The notes beneath the pieces are model-generated. The model was not told the DNA's origin. It worked only from the letters and a program-made list of their open reading frames with translations, and did no database searches. A stretch of DNA of 64,000 nt, from sequence record OP729297.1; one strand, written 5' to 3'. Position numbers and translations under genes: made by a program. Numbering within the stretch: position 1 is the first letter of the stretch; every line of letters starts with the position of its first letter. This document shows, piece after piece, positions 315 to 7,747 of this stretch.

Positions 315-578
315 TCAATCTGCCAACACGTAGTTGGTGTGCAGCTCGGATGCTGTGATTGCATCGAACTTACCATCTTCGCGTTTTATTGCATAGTTGC
401 CAACTGCCACGTTCGCAAGAGTGGGCTTGCCGTACTGGTCAGTCACACCGATTTGAACGTAACGCCCTACAACGTAACCGCTGCCGTTGAGAAAGTTATT
501 CATCTCCTCAACGTTCTCACCGTTCCACTGACAGGCTTCAATCACTGGAACTCGTTTTAACTGAAAGCGATTAATCAT
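315..578 (-). CDS. Small hypothetical phage protein
   Basis: 87-aa ORF with IEACQWNGEN motif typical of small phage proteins; tight operon spacing. Confidence 0.7.
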   Translation of the reverse strand: MINRFQLKRVPVIEACQWNGENVEEMNNFLNGSGYVVGRYVQIGVTDQYGKPTLANVAVGNYAIKREDGKFDAITASELHTNYVLAD

Positions 579-590
579 CGTGCCCTCGCG

Positions 591-1211
591 TTATTGCTGC
601 TGGCGCTTTTCAAGGAACTCTCGCACCAACCCTGCATAGTTGTGATACATGCTGCGCTTCACACCGAGTTTGTGTGCTGCAACAATCATTGACGGACTCG
701 ATAAGAACTTAGGCGTATCGTCCAGTTCTTCACGCGCGCCGTGTTCATCAAACTCCGAGCCTGACGCGAACCGCACTGACTTATCAGCGATAATAAATTC
801 GTGGTCAAGGTCGAAGTGTTTGATACGCCCAGCGATGCGTCCGAGTTGCCGTTGCTTCTTGTAGATGTTTACAGAAATTGAGGAAGCAACAACAGGCGTT
901 GAGCCACACTGCAAATCATCGCAGTAGATGATGTTATGGCTCTGACCGCATTGATCAATCATGCTACGTGCAACAAGAGAGCCTACGTAACTACTGATCA
1001 GGAACAGGCCGCGATAGGTACCCAGCACGTTACCGATATGTTTCTCGATCTCCTGCGCTTCAAAGCCCATAGACAATGAAGGATAAGGAGCATACTGAGC
1101 GCGAATGCGCGGATTGTTTGGAGCGTGAGTGCGGCAGTTGATATTCGACTCACGCAATTTCTCAGCTACATAATTGCAGCCTACGCCACCGTCAATGATG
1201 TGTACTAACAT
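591..1211 (-). CDS. Hypothetical protein, possibly a degenerate Asp/Glu racemase (MurI-like) fold
   Basis: ATG 1 nt after upstream stop; IIDGGVG resembles MurI VFDSGVG; APYP ~ FPYG; LISSYVGS ~ VACNTAS; FLSSPS ~ ILGCTH; Ser replaces both catalytic Cys. Confidence 0.4.
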   Translation of the reverse strand: MLVHIIDGGVGCNYVAEKLRESNINCRTHAPNNPRIRAQYAPYPSLSMGFEAQEIEKHIGNVLGTYRGLFLISSYVGSLVARSMIDQCGQSHNIIYCDDLQCGSTPVVASSISVNIYKKQRQLGRIAGRIKHFDLDHEFIIADKSVRFASGSEFDEHGAREELDDTPKFLSSPSMIVAAHKLGVKRSMYHNYAGLVREFLEKRQQQ

Positions 1212-1212
1212 G

Positions 1213-2082
1213 TTACGTCCTCGTTGACCAATCACGGGCAACATCCATGATACGCTTGCGCCCGTTGAAGTTGATCTCAGGATTATCCAGTAAGCGTTCG
1301 AAGTACGCAGGTACTCCAGCTTCTGTTTGATATCCGCGATGTGGGCGATGCCCTACAATAGCGATGTGGTCAGCCCATGCTTCTGTAATAGGTTGTTTCT
1401 GCTTAGGCTGATTGAGTTCCTGCCATGTGTACTTGATGAAGTAATCAAATACTTTCGGCTGCATCCACGGGTTAACGTGAACGAGGCCGAAGTGGTCACA
1501 CAGCATTTCGTGTTGCAGCATACCGCTTGGGTTATACCCATCAACACCGAGAGACTTCTTACCGTCTTTGATCCACGGGCGGAAGTATTCGGTGCGGTAC
1601 GCGTGATACTTTTCAGCGACTGAGTGCGGGCCACTTACTTTCTGAATGTGTGTATTGCGGTTATACAGGAAGTAACCGTCGGCCACCAGACCACTGAGCA
1701 CATACTTAAACCCAGCTTCTTTGATCGCCTTGTAGCAATACACCATAGGGTACGCACACTCATAGTCACGCTTCTTAATGCAGCGAAACTTTTTATGCAG
1801 CGTCTTCCAGCCCTGAGCAATAGCACTGTCAGACGTAGGCACTTTGACGAGCGTGAACTCCCAGCCCATCTTCTGTGCGACGATTGCAGCGTGTTTGCTA
1901 TCGAAGCTCTGGTTGTCGCCCATCTGGAAAGTAAAGGCATGGACCTTCATGCCGAGATCGTGCGCGGCGAGTGCGCTAACCAAACCGTCGAGGCCGCTCG
2001 AAAGCAGAACGGCCACTTCTTTGGCTTTGACCTCTTTCTTTACGTGCTGTTCAAACAGCTTGCGAAGAGGATGTTTAGCCAT
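1213..2082 (-). CDS. Asparagine-synthetase-like ATP-dependent amide ligase (synthetase domain only)
   Basis: PP-loop LLSSGLDG; LSGLVADGYF ~ LSGEGADELF; no N-terminal Ntn glutaminase domain; start MAKHPL overlaps upstream gene by 8 nt. Confidence 0.8.
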   Translation of the reverse strand: MAKHPLRKLFEQHVKKEVKAKEVAVLLSSGLDGLVSALAAHDLGMKVHAFTFQMGDNQSFDSKHAAIVAQKMGWEFTLVKVPTSDSAIAQGWKTLHKKFRCIKKRDYECAYPMVYCYKAIKEAGFKYVLSGLVADGYFLYNRNTHIQKVSGPHSVAEKYHAYRTEYFRPWIKDGKKSLGVDGYNPSGMLQHEMLCDHFGLVHVNPWMQPKVFDYFIKYTWQELNQPKQKQPITEAWADHIAIVGHRPHRGYQTEAGVPAYFERLLDNPEINFNGRKRIMDVARDWSTRT

Positions 2083-3130
2083 TGGACTCGCTCCTGCACA
2101 TAGCCTCTCGTTCAAGTCGATCAGCAATGTCAGCAACGTAAGACAGATCGCGCGATGGGTCGAACACAGGCATCGAGTACAGGTCCTCCATCTCGCGCAT
2201 AGCATCGTCTTGTTCTTCGATAGTCAGGTCGCTTTCAGAGAAATTGACACTGATACCGAGATACTCAGGAGTAAGACCGTGAATGGCCGCTGCGTCCAGG
2301 TTAGCAGTCAATTCGAATGTCAGGTCAGGCGCACGTTTAACACCGAGCTGGTTCTTACGGCCCCACGCATGACACATGATGAAGTAGTCAGGCTGCGAGC
2401 CAGCAATCAGGCTCATGCTGCCACCAGTATACGCTGGGTGAGTAATAGCACCCTGACCTTCGATCAGATACACACGATCAGCAGGACCATCTGGAGATAA
2501 AGACTCAGCAGCACCTGCAAGGAAGTCAGCCACCAGCGTATCGTTGTTGATGCCGCAGTTACTGATCAGAAAACCAGTCTGGCCAGTAGAGCAGAATACG
2601 GTATCTGGATGACGAGCCTTAAGCGCGTTAAACAGAGTCAGCGTCGTGAACTTCTTACCGCAGGAGCTATCGGTACCAACAGTCAGCAGACGAATGCCTT
2701 TGCGCTTCTCGCCAGTACCGAGAGGGTACGCATCAGGACGGTGGCGGAAGTCATACAGCTTGACGTTATACTGTTCGGCCAACGCAACGTACTCGGCATT
2801 ATCAGCCAGACGATTGTGCATAGCGGCAGCTACGTTCAGGCCACGATAGATAGCACTGCGAATAGTGCGGTCCATGTGCTCGTCAATCTTACCGCCGAAC
2901 GGTGCACAGCCGATTACCAGAGTACGTGCATCTGTGGCATGGACGCTTGCGATGTTGACGTGAGGCACATCAGGGAACAGGCCGTTATCGTCGGCAACAA
3001 CGCAGCAGACTTTCTCTGACGCCCATTCGATTGTGCCTGAGGCAACTTTTGCCTGAGCACGAGTTTCACAGTTGCCACAATACATGGCGAACGGTTGAGG
3101 GATGTTATAAATATCACCACTTACGCTCAT
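2075..3130 (-). CDS. DUF1611 family protein (DgcN-like N-acetyltransferase)
   Basis: Family motifs IPQPF, LVIGCAPFGG, AAAMHNRL, LLTVGTDSSCGKKFT, STGQTG, IEGQGAITHPAY, GSQPD. Confidence 0.85.
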   Translation of the reverse strand: MSVSGDIYNIPQPFAMYCGNCETRAQAKVASGTIEWASEKVCCVVADDNGLFPDVPHVNIASVHATDARTLVIGCAPFGGKIDEHMDRTIRSAIYRGLNVAAAMHNRLADNAEYVALAEQYNVKLYDFRHRPDAYPLGTGEKRKGIRLLTVGTDSSCGKKFTTLTLFNALKARHPDTVFCSTGQTGFLISNCGINNDTLVADFLAGAAESLSPDGPADRVYLIEGQGAITHPAYTGGSMSLIAGSQPDYFIMCHAWGRKNQLGVKRAPDLTFELTANLDAAAIHGLTPEYLGISVNFSESDLTIEEQDDAMREMEDLYSMPVFDPSRDLSYVADIADRLEREAMCRSESNG

Positions 3131-3141
3131 TTCGTTTTACC

Positions 3142-3912
3142 TTATTTGACTGCGATCCATCCAGCAAAGTTCAGGTCGCGGTAGAAACACTCTACACGGT
3201 CGAAGCCAGCTTTACGCAGCAGTTCTTCGTTCCATGCAGCTTTCACAGGCACCAGTACGCCTTCGAGGGACTTACGCTTAGCCGCAATAGATTCTTGCGA
3301 GTAGCCGTTATCGCCTTTCATGCCGTAGTAGGTGTCTACCAGCAGACGGTCAAGGAAGTTGTCGTCACCCAACACTTTCTCAACCAGAATAAACGCGCCG
3401 CCTTTCTGCAACGAGTCGTACACTTTCTCCAGGATGTGCTGACGGTGTTCAATCGGCGTGAACTGTAGAGTAAGCACAGACAGAATCAGTGAGCACTCAA
3501 CCTGCTCGTCGAAGCGGAACGTGTCTACTTCCACCAGCGACTCACTACTGATCTTCGCTTTAGCCGTTTTCAGCACAGGGTTTTCACGCAGACGCTCAAG
3601 CATCGCAGGCGCGACTTCGTAGCAGCAGTACAGGTTACCTACTTCACGGTCTGGCTCAGGACGATCAGCAGCGTGAAGATACAGGTACTCGCCGAACTCT
3701 GCACAGAACGGTTCGACAGCACGACCGAGTGATGCACCAAGATCGACAATGGCCGAGCCGGGTGTTACGAACTGGCGACCAAGACGGTACGTCAGGTCAC
3801 GCATACGGTCATACGATGGGATTGAGTTTTGCAGCATGTTATCGAACACAGAAGCTACTGGCTCATTGAACTCCCAGCGACCTTCTGGCATTGTTTTATC
3901 AACGTTGCTCAT
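3142..3912 (-). CDS. cmoA: CmoA-like carboxy-S-adenosylmethionine synthase
   Basis: Colinear with E. coli CmoA: WEFNEPVASVFDNM, DLGASLG, LTLQF, GGAFILVEK, NGYSQESIAAKRKSLEGV (Arg equivalent to R199), AGF. Confidence 0.85.
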   Translation of the reverse strand: MSNVDKTMPEGRWEFNEPVASVFDNMLQNSIPSYDRMRDLTYRLGRQFVTPGSAIVDLGASLGRAVEPFCAEFGEYLYLHAADRPEPDREVGNLYCCYEVAPAMLERLRENPVLKTAKAKISSESLVEVDTFRFDEQVECSLILSVLTLQFTPIEHRQHILEKVYDSLQKGGAFILVEKVLGDDNFLDRLLVDTYYGMKGDNGYSQESIAAKRKSLEGVLVPVKAAWNEELLRKAGFDRVECFYRDLNFAGWIAVK

Positions 3913-3963: not shown

Positions 3964-4725
3964 TTAAACGCGAAAACGGCGACCGTTAACCGTACTGCGA
4001 GTTTCAGAGGGATCACTGAACCCACGAGTAACGTCACGTGGAGCGATAGAGCCGTTGAACACAGGAGTAAGGTCTGCATAGGAGCGAGGCTCAGCCAGTT
4101 TCTTACCAGCAGCGGCCGCATCTGCTTTTGCTTTCTCACGCGCTTTCTTTGATGCGACGATGCGTGGATCAGTATAGAGTGGCTCACGCTTCATGCCGAG
4201 AATGGACATCATGCGATGTGGGTGCGCCTCAGCAATCTCACGAATCTTATCCATCTCACCTTTGCGTACAGCCATGCGAAGAATAGATTGACCAGTTGAG
4301 ATCTCAGACGTAGTGCCAACACTCACTAGACGACGGCGACATTCACCTAAACCGAACCACGCGTCAGCAGACTTCCACACCGAGTAATCACCACGAGCCA
4401 GTTGGCCGAAGCGTTTGAGTTCAAGGAAGCGGAACTGCCAATCACTGCCATACAGATGAATAGCGGCAGCGATATAGATCGGTTGGATGTTGAGAGACAG
4501 ACCAATCTCCACAGCGTTATACGAGGCAGTACAGAAAGAGCCGACCTGCGAAAGACAGAACTCAAAGTAGCGATCTGAGTCAGCGCACAAATCACTTTCA
4601 GCAGACTTGCTGAGAATGCGAGTGCGTCCGTCTTTCATAAGTCCCTCAAGCATCTCACGATCAGGTGAGGGCCGAGTATAATCCAGTCTGTTTAAACGGG
4701 CTTCAATTTTCTGCACAGTTATCAT
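3964..4725 (-). CDS. Hypothetical protein
   Basis: 253-aa ORF overlapping upstream gene by 4 nt. Confidence 0.7.
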   Translation of the reverse strand: MITVQKIEARLNRLDYTRPSPDREMLEGLMKDGRTRILSKSAESDLCADSDRYFEFCLSQVGSFCTASYNAVEIGLSLNIQPIYIAAAIHLYGSDWQFRFLELKRFGQLARGDYSVWKSADAWFGLGECRRRLVSVGTTSEISTGQSILRMAVRKGEMDKIREIAEAHPHRMMSILGMKREPLYTDPRIVASKKAREKAKADAAAAGKKLAEPRSYADLTPVFNGSIAPRDVTRGFSDPSETRSTVNGRRFRV

Positions 4726-5066
4726 GGCACGTACTCCGACAGCTTATCGTGCGTTGTTACACCCGCAAGGAAGTCACATGCAATCAGCTTCAAGCGGAAA
4801 ACAGTTTTGTCTTTCGGGAATGCGTTAGCATCCAGAGTACGGAAAGAACAGCCGTAGCGAATGCGATACAGGCCTTCTTCCGTCTGAGCGTACAGGACTT
4901 CATTTTCCTGAATCGCTTGAATTACAGGCACCGCCACTCCTGGCTTAACTTCCACCTGCACTGATTTCGTTGCTTCTTCAACAACGACGCTTAAAATAGA
5001 GTGTTGGCCACTATCGGTTCCATCTCCGTAAAAGAGCCAATCAAATCCGCGTATTGTATTCATCAA
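4722..5066 (-). CDS. Hypothetical protein
   Basis: 114-aa ORF in tight operon. Confidence 0.65.
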   Translation of the reverse strand: MMNTIRGFDWLFYGDGTDSGQHSILSVVVEEATKSVQVEVKPGVAVPVIQAIQENEVLYAQTEEGLYRIRYGCSFRTLDANAFPKDKTVFRLKLIACDFLAGVTTHDKLSEYVP

Positions 5067-5078
5067 TACACCCCAGAG

Positions 5079-5672
5079 TTATTGCGCAACGCCCCGCACA
5101 AAGTTAGTGTTGTAGTTGCGTGGTAAGTATGCGTACATGTTGAACTGGTGCTTCTCACAGATAGCATCAAGGACGACACATACTTCTTCCCACGAAACCC
5201 CGCCGAGTCCGCCATAGAAACGCTGAATAGCGATCTGTCGGTCCAATGCAATGTTCAGTTTGTCTGCCTGCTCCAGCAGGTCTTCGAACGCCCGCGTCAG
5301 GAACTTCTCACTGAAACGATTGATAGGTTTGTGATAACCTTCCGAAGAACCATTCTGGCCGAGACCGAAACCGCGAGCGATGTGCATGTTGGCCACAAAC
5401 AGATTGCGGCGGTGCTGAGTGCCCACACGAACCATGTGCGTCTTACCGATAGTGAGTTCGTGTTCGTAGTCGATTGATTCGACCTTGCGCACAACCTCTG
5501 GGAATCGACGTGCAATGCTCTTTTGAATGGGACTACCGTAAGCACCACGAGCGTTGCACTCAACGCCGATAACGCGGAACTTACCTTGAATGAAGTCAGT
5601 AACGAGATTGCCCTTCTCAACGGGGATTACTCGAAACTGCTTCGGAGCGTAACCGATAGCAGACAAATCCAT
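5079..5672 (-). CDS. Macro domain protein (Poa1/DarG-like, divergent)
   Basis: GNL..DF, VECNARGAYGSPIQKSIARRFP, IAIQRFYGGLGGVSWEEV match the macrodomain pattern. Confidence 0.7.
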   Translation of the reverse strand: MDLSAIGYAPKQFRVIPVEKGNLVTDFIQGKFRVIGVECNARGAYGSPIQKSIARRFPEVVRKVESIDYEHELTIGKTHMVRVGTQHRRNLFVANMHIARGFGLGQNGSSEGYHKPINRFSEKFLTRAFEDLLEQADKLNIALDRQIAIQRFYGGLGGVSWEEVCVVLDAICEKHQFNMYAYLPRNYNTNFVRGVAQ

Positions 5673-6224: not shown

Positions 6225-7253
6225 TTAGACGTGTAATAGATGCGGTAGACCCAAGCGTTTCATAGTTGCTTTCAACGCTTTTATATCAGGTCTGCCTGGC
6301 GCGAACGCTTCGATCTTGCGAGGCAAAGTCGGAACGTTACGGTCGATAGTTACAAGCTCCATTTGCAATTCAATATCCATTGAAGGTACCTTGCCTGTCA
6401 GTGCTTGCGCCCAACGAGCATTCGACTTCAACTTGCCGCTCAACAACGCATCTCGAAGTTCGAGCGCGCCGCCATAACGGTGAATGAACTCGGCCGCAGT
6501 CTTTTCGCCAATGCCCGGAATCCCTGGAACGTTATCAACGCTATCGCCGGAAAGTGCCAGCATATCAATAACGCGATCCGGAGGTACGCCAAAGAATCCT
6601 TGAGCAGTTTTAAGCGTGAAGCGACGCTCGGCTGCATTAGACTGCGCTTGCATGATAAGCTCAACGTTCTTGTGGTCCACAAGTTGCACGTAGTCTTTAT
6701 CACGCGAGTATAGCTTGACCAGATAGTTGTGCTTGAAGCGATCACTCAGTGTGCCTACAAGGTCATCACATTCGTAAGGCGCTTTTATGCCAACGTAGTA
6801 CCCAGCCATTTCAAGAATACGCTGCGCCAGTTCCATTTGCACAGGGAGTTCGACAGTCAGCGAACGATCTCGGTTGCCCTTATAGTCGCTCGACTTCTTG
6901 AAGACCTCCTTAACGTATTTCTTTTTGTTCTCGGCAGCCCATTGTTGAATCGCACGGTAGCGCCATGTTGCGGAACTGCTTGGGTCGAAGCACCACGCAA
7001 TGTACGCACCGTTAGGGTCTTTCGCCGCAATATCAATCAAGTCTTTCGCCATGTTCATGAACTGACGCAAGCCATAGTTGGGCGTACCATCTTTGGCATA
7101 GGTCGGATTCTTGTTTGTGGCAAAATACGCTCGGCACATCCAGTTCGAGGCATCAACGATATGCAGCATAGGCAGCTTACCGTACTTGATTTTCATCTTC
7201 GGTGTCGTGCCAGCAACGGGAGTTTTCCCGATAGAGGCGAACGATCTACTCAT
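6225..7253 (-). CDS. 5'-3' exonuclease / flap endonuclease (Pol I N-terminal type)
   Basis: IVDASNWMCRAYF, WCFD, YKGNR, YECDDLVGTL, YSRDKDYVQLV, LSGDSVDNVPGIPGIGEKTA; start MSRSF after GGAGG. Confidence 0.9.
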   Translation of the reverse strand: MSRSFASIGKTPVAGTTPKMKIKYGKLPMLHIVDASNWMCRAYFATNKNPTYAKDGTPNYGLRQFMNMAKDLIDIAAKDPNGAYIAWCFDPSSSATWRYRAIQQWAAENKKKYVKEVFKKSSDYKGNRDRSLTVELPVQMELAQRILEMAGYYVGIKAPYECDDLVGTLSDRFKHNYLVKLYSRDKDYVQLVDHKNVELIMQAQSNAAERRFTLKTAQGFFGVPPDRVIDMLALSGDSVDNVPGIPGIGEKTAAEFIHRYGGALELRDALLSGKLKSNARWAQALTGKVPSMDIELQMELVTIDRNVPTLPRKIEAFAPGRPDIKALKATMKRLGLPHLLHV

Positions 7254-7747
7254 TGTTCCTCCGCGAATACGAGAGAACGGCCTCGACCGCGTTCGCGTAG
7301 CGCATGATGAAACCCCAAGCCGCAACAGAACATATCAATCGTGTCTGTATCGACTTCGGCAATCTTCGACGTCTGGGCAAGCTCATGCAGATAGCTATCA
7401 CCAGCACAGAAGTAACGAGCGAGTGGATCGACAACTGCACCACCGCGAACGAACTGTAGAACGACCTGACCTGTGAACGTAAGTGTCCTAAGGTCAAGTT
7501 GTGGAGCTTGCGAACAGAGTTTGAAGTTGCGCTTAAAGAGGCGTTTCAAGGCGTAAGCGGCGCCGGGGCCGTCCGTAAACAAAATAATCTGACAATGTTC
7601 AGGAGCAGCCGATAGGAGAACTTTCAGTCCTTCCTTGTTTGAGGAACGAACGAAAGCTGTATCGAAGGGAGGTACTCGTTTCGGCTGCTTGAAGAAAATG
7701 CGATGCCTTGCGCTATTAGGACTTCCGTCCACTGAGTTTGTTTCCAT
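7250..7747 (-). CDS. Hypothetical protein
   Basis: 165-aa ORF with overlapping start and stop codons at both ends. Confidence 0.7.
   Translation of the reverse strand: METNSVDGSPNSARHRIFFKQPKRVPPFDTAFVRSSNKEGLKVLLSAAPEHCQIILFTDGPGAAYALKRLFKRNFKLCSQAPQLDLRTLTFTGQVVLQFVRGGAVVDPLARYFCAGDSYLHELAQTSKIAEVDTDTIDMFCCGLGFHHALRERGRGRSLVFAEEQ

Follow-up and report, generated by a model that had tools for sequence, protein, structure and literature searches.

We propose that four tightly spaced genes of the Erwinia jumbo phage vB_Ea_2910A belong to a cytosine hypermodification system of the CmoA-CmoX-CmoY type. They would be the part of this system that lies in the window, a 64,000-nucleotide stretch of the phage genome (record OP729297.1), and the product would be an undescribed amide of 5-carboxymethylcytosine (5cxmC). 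We give this reading a probability of about 0.7. The type is known from Synechococcus phage S-B43, where CmoA-CmoX-CmoY lead through 5cxmC to 5-glycylcarboxymethylcytosine (Yang et al., Nat Commun 2025, PMC12783734). That paper makes no mention of DUF1611, racemases, oxygenases, chorismate-pathway genes or these phages. An earlier note on this DNA described the CmoA, CmoX and CmoY enzymes accurately and considered the locus a candidate new hypermodification pathway. In our reading the locus is a variant of the published system and not a new type of pathway.

The genes are arranged as follows, with positions counted in the window unless the record is named:

3142-3912, minus strand: cmoA-like gene, 256 aa
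2075-3130, minus strand: DUF1611/DgcN-like gene, 351 aa
1213-2082, minus strand: predicted PP-loop amide ligase gene, 289 aa
591-1211, minus strand: g4, 206 aa
315-578, minus strand: g5, 87 aa
1-307, minus strand: g6, cut by the window edge with the N-terminal two thirds inside; complete gene at record positions 123852-124307, 151 aa, phrog_23597

The cmoA-like and DUF1611 genes are separated by 11 nt (3131-3141), the DUF1611 and ligase genes overlap by 8 nt (2075-2082), and a single nucleotide (1212) lies between the ligase gene and g4. These open reading frames and gaps were exactly as the earlier note had given them and agree with the GenBank CDS of the record. The gene string also runs past the left edge as claimed, with g5 followed by g6 reaching the edge. 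The window holds no tRNA genes. The family matches given below for the cmoA-like, DUF1611 and ligase products are far too strong to be due to chance.

The cmoA-like product is a predicted carboxy-SAM (Cx-SAM) synthase, which would make Cx-SAM from SAM and prephenate. It matched TIGR00740 with an E-value of 3.5e-42, although its 144.7 bits are below the NCBIfam equivalog cutoff of 193.3, and it matched phrog_4752 (E 6.6e-80). Its nearest solved structures are CmoA proteins (4GEK, 4IWN and 1IM8, at about E 1e-30), whereas other methyltransferases follow at about 1e-7. Alignment with E. coli CmoA confirmed that the R199-equivalent Arg is retained (IAAKRKSLE against ISQKRSMLE), so by its sequence the protein appears to combine the CmoA fold with the key Arg of this system. 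It differs from the E. coli enzyme by an insertion of ~30 aa at residues ~67-98. The identity is 43% to PaBG CmoA and 30% to CmoA of cyanophage S-B05; the enzyme that was assayed is SpCmoA, the S-B43 counterpart of the latter (PMC12783734).

The window lacks both CmoX and CmoB, as noted earlier, and DNA as the target had been left unproven. A search of the rest of the genome for a C5-methyltransferase-like gene with a Cx-SAM-selective Arg found a CmoX ortholog at record positions 107846-109975. It lies on the same strand as the cassette, ~14.6 kb downstream and ~27 genes apart. The nearest solved structure of its product is SpCmoX (8YF3, E 5.6e-54), while HaeIII gave 1e-16. Its GSPPC and ERLGR segments align with S95-C98 and R350 of SpCmoX, and the Arg that replaces Asn at position 350 and selects for Cx-SAM is kept. 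An intein of ~357 aa is inserted exactly at the catalytic Cys, with boundaries that appear canonical (GSPP/CFTED...VVHN/CKGFSTAG, junctions marked by slashes). The adjoining gene is ParB-like (phrog_620, E 2.7e-32), which agrees with the published ParBc association (PMC12783734). DNA is now strongly indicated as the predicted target, as vB_Ea_2910A itself carries this CmoX ortholog, which has both SPPC and the Cx-SAM Arg and adjoins a ParB-like gene.

The third protein is probably an AMP-forming amide ligase homologous to SpCmoY. It matched PF00733 (Asn_synthase, E 1.2e-13) over residues 6-138, which is the ATP-binding part only, and its alignments spanned just model positions ~235-387 in TIGR01536 and 2-132 in PF00733. 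Pfam and NCBIfam profile searches found no glutaminase domain. Asparagine synthetase B (glutamine-hydrolysing) was ruled out, as the N-terminal glutamine amidotransferase domain is missing. The protein is 34% identical to the CmoY-like protein of S-B05 (E 1e-50) and 33% identical to CmoY of the S-B43 genome (H127). The SxGxD PP-loop is invariant in the ligase alignment, and a C-terminal RKR(I/V)MD motif is common to the ligase and cyanophage CmoY. An AsnS ATP-binding domain without glutaminase, together with homology to SpCmoY, is what characterises CmoY, and the glutaminase-less amide ligase of the earlier note can thus be named a CmoY homolog.

Gene neighbourhoods in other phages link the same functions. 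Records with CmoA and records with a CmoX-like gene coincided in Erwinia (48/48), Dickeya (2/2), Yersinia (1/1), PaBG (2/2) and Synechococcus (6/6) phages. With E. coli CmoB as the tblastn query, CmoB was not found in vB_Ea_2910A or its relatives, nor in 50,697 phage records save one 3.4-kb fragment resembling host DNA. The CmoA-CmoX-ligase linkage is contiguous in PaBG (ParB-CmoX-CmoA-g6-ligase) and in three metagenomic or IMG/VR phage contigs, L032 (ParB-CmoX-chorismate mutase-CmoA-DUF1611-ligase-g6), L033 and L044 (both ParB-CmoX-DUF1611-ligase-CmoA-g6). Chorismate mutase, or DAHP synthase (TIGR00034, 180 bits, cutoff 173), occurs in phage cassettes, and we count this as support since both are routes to prephenate, the co-substrate of CmoA. 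Co-occurrence of the four genes in relatives, on which the earlier proposal depended, held up, with DUF1611 tied specifically to the ligase. Proposed as swapped accessory genes among closely related Erwinia jumbo phages are DUF1611, an Alr-like racemase, a 420-aa GT-like protein, a 2OG-Fe(II) oxygenase and MurI-like paralogs.

Both domains of the DUF1611 protein exceed the Pfam gathering scores: DUF1611_C (PF07755) with E 5.9e-46 and 156.9 bits (cutoff 25), and DUF1611_N (PF17396) with E 1.4e-17 and 64.2 bits (cutoff 22.6). They form a Rossmann-like N domain and a P-loop C domain. The nearest solved structure is 7XRJ (E 1.6e-51), which we take to be DgcN. The full-length two-domain architecture is the same, and the core motifs GTDxxxGK, TGQTG, ADFxAG, IEGQG and CH are common to both. 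DgcN, which makes N-acetyl-D-glutamate, is the only characterised member of the family and is described as the D-glutamate N-acetyltransferase of the DgcN-DgcA D-Glu catabolic pathway (NF041892; Yu et al. ISME J 2023, cited in PMC12363236). The phage protein, however, is not a DgcN equivalog. Its match to NF041892 (E 3.6e-83) reached 279 bits, below the equivalog cutoff of 480 (NCBIfam), and in the tree 22/22 sampled cellular-type DUF1611 sequences formed a clade with 100/100 support, while every phage-context sequence fell outside it.

The neighbours of phage DUF1611 are CmoA, CmoX and the CmoY-like ligase, not cellular genes. In 10/10 phage lineages DUF1611 is followed directly by the ligase gene or by an Alr-like racemase gene and then the ligase gene; the latter arrangement occurs in 4 of them. 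In contrast, none of 80 cellular-type DUF1611 loci had CmoA, CmoX, the ligase or g6 within 7 kb. DUF1611 is absent from the siblings SNUABM_30, Y3 and fHe-Yen9-02, which keep CmoA, a ligase and g4, and we therefore regard it as accessory and not core. Within the Erwinia phages, cassettes with and without DUF1611 also differ in the type of ligase. The ligase of SNUABM_30 is only 25% identical, whereas the flanking genes are 84-93% identical.

The fourth gene, g4, was called racemase-like. This holds at the level of the fold, but not of the sequence family, as g4 had no match in Pfam, NCBIfam or PHROG, and its family counts no more than 5 representatives in a library of 1.8 billion proteins. The AlphaFold2 model (pLDDT 91, pTM 0.87) suggests a two-domain fold like that of MurI of the Asp/Glu/hydantoin racemase superfamily (PF01177). 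The top 8 Foldseek matches in the PDB were all glutamate racemases (E 1e-4 to 1e-3, probability 1.0, TM 0.53-0.63), and in a viral structure library the first match outside its own family was an Asp/Glu/hydantoin racemase. An N-terminal hhhhD(S/G)GxGG motif is in register with E. coli MurI. On the other hand, g4 is ~60 residues shorter than MurI. The paralog Yen_190 of Yersinia phage fHe-Yen9-02, which keeps FDSGxGG, FPFGxKT and CACNT and has LGSTH, bridges g4 to MurI. Mapped through this paralog and the secondary-structure register, both positions of the MurI catalytic Cys pair (ACNTA and GCTH) appear to be Ser in g4 (S74 in LISS74YVGS and S172 in FLSS172PS), and both are invariant in A3. Two-thiol racemisation is therefore unlikely, and the probable role of g4 is to bind a Glu-like amino acid without racemising it.

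From these data a reaction sequence may be drawn. CmoA would turn SAM and host prephenate into Cx-SAM, as its homology and retained Arg suggest. The CmoX ortholog, with SPPC and the Cx-SAM-selective Arg, would carboxymethylate C5 of cytosines in the phage DNA. Given the homology to SpCmoY and the common C-terminal RKR motif, the ligase would then adenylate the 5-carboxymethyl group and couple it to an amine, for which an alpha-amino acid is the most likely candidate. DUF1611, translationally coupled to the ligase, would work with it, either setting which group is appended or completing that group. We prefer a role in forming an N-acyl-D-amino-acid bond, since, in formal terms, linking D-Glu to 5cxmC as an amide yields a substituted N-acetyl-D-glutamate. 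Alternatively, DUF1611 could acetylate a free amine remaining on the adduct; the N-acylation of the adduct proposed earlier is thus one among several possible roles. The resulting 5cxmC amide would shield the phage DNA from host nucleases.

The product may be a D-amino-acid amide of 5cxmC. In its full form, which we put forward tentatively and consider possible but rather doubtful, DUF1611 and the CmoY-like ligase would be a two-component amide synthase that puts a D-amino acid (e.g. D-glutamate) on 5cxmC, with swaps of accessory genes diversifying the bases. The host pool would supply the D-amino acid, or in sibling phages a PLP racemase encoded in the cassette would make it; the Alr-like gene of the sibling cassettes carries the PLP-lysine motif VVKGNFYGHG. 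The possible D-form had already been raised in the earlier note, and the DgcN-like protein, the MurI-like fold of g4 and this Alr-like gene now lend it support. If true, this would be the first DNA base with a D-amino acid, and the swaps would yield at least 5 chemically different cytosine hypermodifications among closely related Erwinia jumbo phages.

Several findings count against the proposed cytosine system with its undescribed amide: the distance of CmoX from the cassette, the CmoA and DUF1611 scores below the equivalog cutoffs, the low ligase identity to SpCmoY (33-34%), the siblings without DUF1611, the apparent loss of both catalytic cysteines in g4, and the use of free D-Glu and acetyl-CoA, not DNA, by characterised DgcN. 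Some of them would fit the same DNA system with an ordinary product, in which the ligase alone makes a plain amide such as 5-glycylcarboxymethylcytosine and DUF1611 and g4 act elsewhere, in D-Glu/peptidoglycan-precursor metabolism or host takeover. Some bacterial MurI proteins inhibit gyrase, and a catalytically dead MurI-like g4 might do the same. An ordinary product also draws support from the RKR(I/V)MD motif that the ligase has in common with cyanophage CmoY (a glycine-ligating enzyme in S-B43), from the siblings that do without DUF1611, from the free D-Glu substrate of its characterised relative and from the apparently missing Cys pair. We nevertheless find an ordinary product unlikely: DUF1611 is immediately upstream of the ligase in all ten phage lineages, with the 8-nt overlap in vB_Ea_2910A, in L033 and L044 it has CmoX on one side and the ligase on the other, cellular-type loci have no such neighbours (0/80), and the ligase type covaries with it.

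Two readings without DNA hypermodification are less probable still. The classical role of CmoA is in cmo5U synthesis, a pathway that the Gram-negative host has, and both RefSeq and PHROG label the gene a tRNA methyltransferase, so the phage CmoA could boost cmo5U34 in host tRNAs. This is very improbable with no CmoB homolog in vB_Ea_2910A or any real phage record, no tRNA genes in the window and CmoA linked to a DNA C5-methyltransferase homolog that bears the Cx-SAM Arg; the cmo5U pathway also has no place for the ligase or DUF1611. Membership in the tRNA cmo5U34 pathway (CmoA plus CmoB) was accordingly rejected. A small-molecule or cofactor pathway would instead make a Cx-SAM-derived or N-acyl-D-amino-acid metabolite, or CmoA would mainly drain SAM to weaken SAM-dependent host defences. 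The cassette does not adjoin CmoX in vB_Ea_2910A, DgcN and racemases work on free amino acids, and Cx-SAM also serves natural-product biosynthesis, with SAM depletion raised as a possibility (PMC12783734). We consider such a pathway improbable, because orthologs of every cassette gene share an operon with CmoX in PaBG, L032, L033 and L044, CmoA and CmoX co-occur perfectly in the phage group and the characterised ligase homolog works on DNA-borne 5cxmC (PMC12783734).

Compared with the S-B43 system, vB_Ea_2910A likewise has CmoA with the key Arg, CmoX with SPPC and the R350-equivalent, a glutaminase-less ligase, a ParB-like gene and no CmoB. It differs in the distant, intein-interrupted CmoX, in a ligase with an insertion of ~20 aa and in a cassette that adds the ligase-coupled DUF1611, the MurI-fold g4 and the small proteins g5 and g6. 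The proposed scheme also resembles post-replicative thymidine hypermodification, in which the tailoring includes amino-acid adducts and an N-acetylation step. In both, a reactive handle on pyrimidine C5 in DNA would be followed by cassette-encoded tailoring enzymes that vary between related phages, as in the 5-hmdU-derived bases of phages M6, ViI, SP10 and PaMx11 (PMC8989533). However, the handle here would be a carboxylate on cytosine from Cx-SAM and there it is a hydroxymethyl on uracil, activation would proceed by adenylation instead of phosphorylation, and the enzyme families are unrelated.

The small proteins are conserved as well. g5 (phrog_36935, E 1.9e-43) comes after the cassette in every Erwinia and Yersinia relative, and its orthologs are 53-97% identical in all compared cassettes. 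g6 matched its PHROG with E 1.6e-75 and had no match in the PDB. In PaBG an ortholog stands within the contiguous operon, where it separates CmoA from the ligase, and the contiguous operons of L029, L032, L033 and L044 contain one as well. g6 is a conserved companion of CmoA, CmoX and the ligase.

The stretch 591-3912 matches Erwinia phage vB_Ea_2910A of the genus Alexandravirus (OP729297.1, 262,854 bp; record position 124001 is window position 1) at 100% identity. Both the ORFs and the GenBank CDS features show four genes in it, and the string continues leftward:

Genes of the cassette and its continuation, in window positions
3142-3912, minus strand: cmoA-like gene
2075-3130, minus strand: DUF1611 (DgcN-like)
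1213-2082, minus strand: PP-loop ligase (CmoY homolog)
591-1211, minus strand: g4
315-578, minus strand: g5
ends at 307, minus strand, running off the left window edge to record position 123852: g6 (151 aa, phrog_23597)

The gap of 11 nt between cmoA and DUF1611, the 8-nt overlap of DUF1611 with the ligase and the 1-nt gap before g4, as read in the earlier note, agree exactly with both sources. All four cassette genes are annotated as 'hypothetical protein' in OP729297.1, and the RefSeq name of the cmoA-like gene in relatives is 'tRNA methyltransferase'. Scans for promoters and terminators near the cassette gave chance-level results.

A system of this type is known from Synechococcus phage S-B43, where CmoA makes carboxy-SAM (Cx-SAM) (Yang et al., Nat Commun 2025, PMC12783734). 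CmoX, which is homologous to C5-methyltransferases and has an SPPC motif and an Arg350 touching the carboxylate, then forms 5-carboxymethylcytosine in DNA. Glycine is joined to this base in an ATP-driven reaction by CmoY, an asparagine-synthetase homolog that lacks the glutaminase domain (PMC12783734). The scheme given in the earlier note agrees with this. ParBc-domain proteins are frequently associated with the system; its ligases fall into clusters with different pockets, and the authors left amines other than glycine open (PMC12783734). It was first described in December 2025 and has one characterised product, the glycine amide (PMC12783734). By sequence comparison, 2910A has the parts of such a system, which are contiguous in some relatives, with a Cx-SAM-type Arg in CmoA and CmoX, a CmoY homolog and a DUF1611 gene coupled specifically to that of the ligase. 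The system type is already published and the predicted cassette product would probably be new chemistry.

The closest solved structures to the cmoA-like protein are those of CmoA (4GEK, 4IWN and 1IM8), and the R199-equivalent Arg is kept. In the NCBIfam search its match to TIGR00740 (E 3.5e-42, 144.7 bits) was split and below the cutoff of 193.3 because the phage CmoA carries a ~30-aa insertion (EPFCAEFGEYLYLHAADRPEPDREVGNLYCCYE, residues ~67-98) which is absent from E. coli CmoA. A role in tRNA modification, as the RefSeq name implies, was rejected, since these phages have no CmoB and the window contains no tRNA genes. Across the phage records, the only homolog of E. coli CmoB was on a 3.4-kb host-like fragment. 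This fragment, OR851014.1 (Salmonella phage S.Kent 1-2-1, 3,445 bp), holds cmoA and a cmoB 93.5% identical to that of E. coli, and looks like host chromosomal DNA, not like a true pair of phage genes. The database name is hereby corrected for the cmoA-like gene in dozens of phage genomes.

CmoA homologs were found in 70 phage records and CmoX-like genes (E<=1e-30 to the CmoX of Pseudomonas jumbo phage PaBG) in 63. The two sets of records agree fully for Erwinia (48/48), Dickeya (2/2), Yersinia (1/1), PaBG (2/2), Synechococcus (6/6) and Streptomyces (2/2) phages.

Two metagenomic phage contigs carry further enzymes in their cassettes. In L029, an AroFGH-type DAHP synthase without the N-terminal ~50 residues (L029:10943-11806; TIGR00034 180 bits, cutoff 173) lies just after the ligase, and in L032 a chorismate mutase (CM_2, PF01817; L032:4622-5089) is directly upstream of CmoA. 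Both enzymes act en route to prephenate, the co-substrate of CmoA. They look like auxiliary genes which raise the prephenate supply. Their occurrence is independent support for the view that the phage CmoA serves to make Cx-SAM. If this is true, phages bring along a chorismate mutase or DAHP synthase so that CmoA is supplied with prephenate.

The earlier note saw no CmoX-like gene in the window and suggested searching the rest of the genome for a C5-methyltransferase with a Cx-SAM-selective Arg. Such a gene is present. The annotation of Dickeya phage AD1 lists two genes downstream of its cassette, one 'ParB-like' and one for a 709-aa 'DNA-cytosine methyltransferase', and 2910A has orthologs of both outside the window:

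OP729297.1 109978-110688, same strand as the cassette: ParB-like ortholog
OP729297.1 107846-109975 (L006:7846-9975), same strand as the cassette: CmoX ortholog, 14.6 kb beyond g4

The closest solved structure to the CmoX ortholog is 8YF3, the S-B43 enzyme SpCmoX (E 5.6e-54; HaeIII 1e-16). Its LDLLDGSPPC aligns with LDILDGSPPC of SpCmoX and its QWERLGRICVP with TERVGRMVPP. Therefore, the Cx-SAM-selective Arg is present where ordinary C5-methyltransferases have Asn. The PF00145 domain of the 709-aa protein is split by Hint/intein domains. The intein of ~357 aa sits directly before the catalytic Cys (GSPP/CFTEDT...TVVHN/CKGFSTAG, slashes marking the junctions) and has canonical junction residues, so splicing of the precursor would restore GSPPCKGFSTAG. 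The gene size of 2130 nt (2109 nt in Yoloswag) is kept among the Erwinia and Dickeya relatives examined. PaBG CmoX (335 aa) and those of L032 and a further metagenomic contig, L033, have no intein and read straight through the junction; the latter two keep both SPPC and the Arg. The gene adjoining CmoX matches ParB-like phrog_620 (E 2.7e-32), and PaBG has the genes for the ParB-like protein, CmoX, CmoA, the g6 ortholog and the ligase in one uninterrupted block. The interval from the cassette to CmoX includes genes for a Dam-type methyltransferase and for a dCMP deaminase, the latter as annotated in AD1. The 'thymidylate synthase' at L001:4656-5762 (OP729297.1 112655-113761) has 368 aa with ~80-100 extra residues; its Pfam match spans residues 25-366 for a profile of 266 positions.

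Of asparagine synthetase, the ligase has only the ATP-binding PP-loop portion. It is 34% identical to the S-B05 CmoY-like protein over the full length (E 1e-50) and 33% identical to the product of the S-B43 CmoY gene. In an alignment of 15 cassette ligases the SxGxD PP-loop was invariant and two subtypes were seen. Lig1, the window subtype, has a ~20-aa insertion and a C-terminal N..G-RKR(I/V)MD motif common to cyanophage CmoY, and Lig2 has YKSVVGVYN at that position. As judged from sequence, Lig1 would also bind an alpha-amino-acid carboxylate.

In the DUF1611 protein both Pfam domains scored well over threshold, and the NCBIfam DgcN model gave 279 bits (cutoff 480). Of the solved structures, 7XRJ is closest (E 1.6e-51), with core motifs common to both. 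The cultured phages that have DUF1611 are all Erwinia/Dickeya jumbo phages (34 records), and context searches with the single sequence or with close-relative alignments recovered only the Erwinia phage group. Intermediate homologs (41-67% identity) looked up in metagenome assemblies led to phage contigs:

Gene order on metagenomic phage contigs
L026: DUF1611, ligase
L027/L028: DUF1611, alanine-racemase-like (Alr-like), ligase
L034: 406-aa protein, DUF1611, Alr-like, ligase
L029/L030: CmoA, 84-aa protein, 398-aa protein, DUF1611, Alr-like, ligase, DAHP synthase, g6
L032: ParB, CmoX, 78-aa protein, chorismate mutase, CmoA, DUF1611, ligase, g6
L033 and IMG/VR contig L044: ParB, CmoX, DUF1611, ligase, CmoA, g6

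The neighbourhood survey proposed in the earlier note thus found the ligase, or the Alr-like racemase and the ligase, directly downstream of DUF1611 in 10/10 lineages. At 80 control metagenomic DUF1611 loci (35-40% identity), none had CmoA, CmoX, ligase, ParB-like or g6 genes within 7 kb. In the maximum-likelihood tree all 22 sampled controls formed one clade (100/100 support), and all ten phage-context sequences fell outside it. Strict co-occurrence with Lig1 was rejected, as L032, L033 and L044 pair DUF1611 with Lig2. If true, the coupling would give DUF1611 a second, very different role, only the second functional assignment of the family.

Among the cultured relatives the genes after cmoA vary:

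Genes following cmoA
2910A, AD1, Alexandra: DUF1611, Lig1, g4, g5, g6
SNUABM_17 group: 420-aa protein, DUF1611, Alr-like racemase, Lig1, g4, g5, g6
SNUABM_13, SNUABM_7: 420-aa protein, DUF1611, Lig1, 84-aa protein, g5, g6
SNUABM_30: Lig2, g4, g5, g6
Y3: ligase, 49-aa protein, 2OG-Fe(II) oxygenase, g4, g5, g6
Yoloswag: ligase, 44-aa protein, 2OG-Fe(II) oxygenase, 80-aa protein, g5
SNUABM_5: ligase, g4-like, two small proteins, g5
fHe-Yen9-02: ligase, 190-aa protein, g4, g5, g6

The flanking genes of SNUABM_30 are 84-93% identical to those of 2910A, the ligase only 25%, and DUF1611 is missing, which indicates module replacement. Since siblings swap or add the 420-aa protein, the Alr-like enzyme and the 2OG-Fe(II) oxygenase, these cassettes suggest several different final bases inside one phage group. 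In the Alr-like protein the PLP-lysine motif is conserved as VVKGNFYGHG. In pEa_SNUABM_17, the 420-aa protein (L010:1968-3230) has faint glycosyltransferase-like matches only, and the Alr-like PLP enzyme (4258-5202) is truncated. The oxygenases are at L011:3095-3733 (Y3) and L012:3105-3746 (Yoloswag). Such near-isogenic relatives, differing only in tailoring genes, lend themselves to side-by-side nucleoside mass spectrometry, and vB_Ea_2910A, AD1, Alexandra and the SNUABM series offer a concrete, testable case in culturable phages.

A PDB profile search with g6 returned nothing meaningful. The gene is found together with CmoA, CmoX and the ligase in each examined lineage with a readable region, and in PaBG it is part of the operon. 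Such systems may thus far have had g6 as an unrecognised core member.

The product of g4 had no match in Pfam, NCBIfam or PHROGs, and a PDB profile search gave nothing meaningful. Its family is confined to the phage clade of 2910A (17 clusters in a 5.8-billion-sequence set), and a profile search of 1.8 billion representatives returned 5, its own small clade only. An AlphaFold2 model from a shallow close-relative alignment (pLDDT 44) was discarded; a diverse 14-sequence alignment gave pLDDT 91 and pTM 0.87. With this model, the top 8 Foldseek matches in the PDB were all glutamate racemases (E 1e-4 to 1e-3, probability 1.0, TM 0.53-0.63), with an aspartate-racemase homolog further down. Once its own family is set aside, the top match in the viral structure library was an Asp/Glu/hydantoin racemase.

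Against E. coli glutamate racemase MurI, hhalign aligned the N-terminal motif only, placing VHIIDGGVGCNYV on VLVFDSGVGGLSV, and a global pairwise alignment was meaningless. A homolog search with E. coli MurI recovered relatives of >85% identity only and no diverse MurI profile. The 190-aa protein of fHe-Yen9-02 (L003:6522-7094, minus strand) is a g4 paralog (hhalign probability 93.7%, E 2e-7) which adjoins the g4 ortholog. It matches E. coli MurI in BLASTP (E 8e-4), and the motifs FDSGxGG, FPFGTKT/FPYGEKS and CACN/VACN line up. Of the two catalytic Cys, it keeps the first (CACNT), and LGSTH replaces LGCTH. The two proteins may form a heteromeric pair. The g4 positions matching the catalytic Cys would be LISS74YVGS78 and FLSS172PS, with S74 and S172 invariant. 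The earlier note's racemase-like label for g4 therefore holds for the fold; a two-thiol mechanism is unlikely because Ser appears to take both Cys positions. The PaBG 203-aa protein, considered as a g4 relative, had no detectable relationship to it.

We infer the order CmoA, CmoX, ligase, in which the ligase substrate would be an alpha-amino acid. A D-amino acid may be involved, because DgcN-like, MurI-like and Alr-like families occur in these cassettes; this would link D-amino-acid enzymology to DNA modification. DUF1611 could cooperate with the ligase in attaching a D-amino acid through an amide bond. With D-Glu joined in this way to cytosine-5-acetic acid, the compound would formally be a substituted N-acetyl-D-glutamate, the product type of DgcN. 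Alternatively, DUF1611 could acetylate a free amine left on the adduct, which would need a diamine or diamino acid. We slightly prefer cooperation with the ligase because of the invariant DUF1611-ligase adjacency and the translational coupling. PMC12783734 with its supplements and the AD1, PaBG and jumbo-phage papers searched make no mention of the DUF1611 coupling, racemase-family accessories, the g6 companion, prephenate-supply genes, the CmoX intein or cassette swapping in Erwinia jumbo phages.

Two other window genes have annotations in relatives. The one at 5079-5672 is an O-acetyl-ADP-ribose deacetylase (macro domain) there and had no Pfam match here. The one at 6225-7325 is named 'DNA polymerase I', and the syntenic L029 gene has 5'-3' exonuclease domains only.
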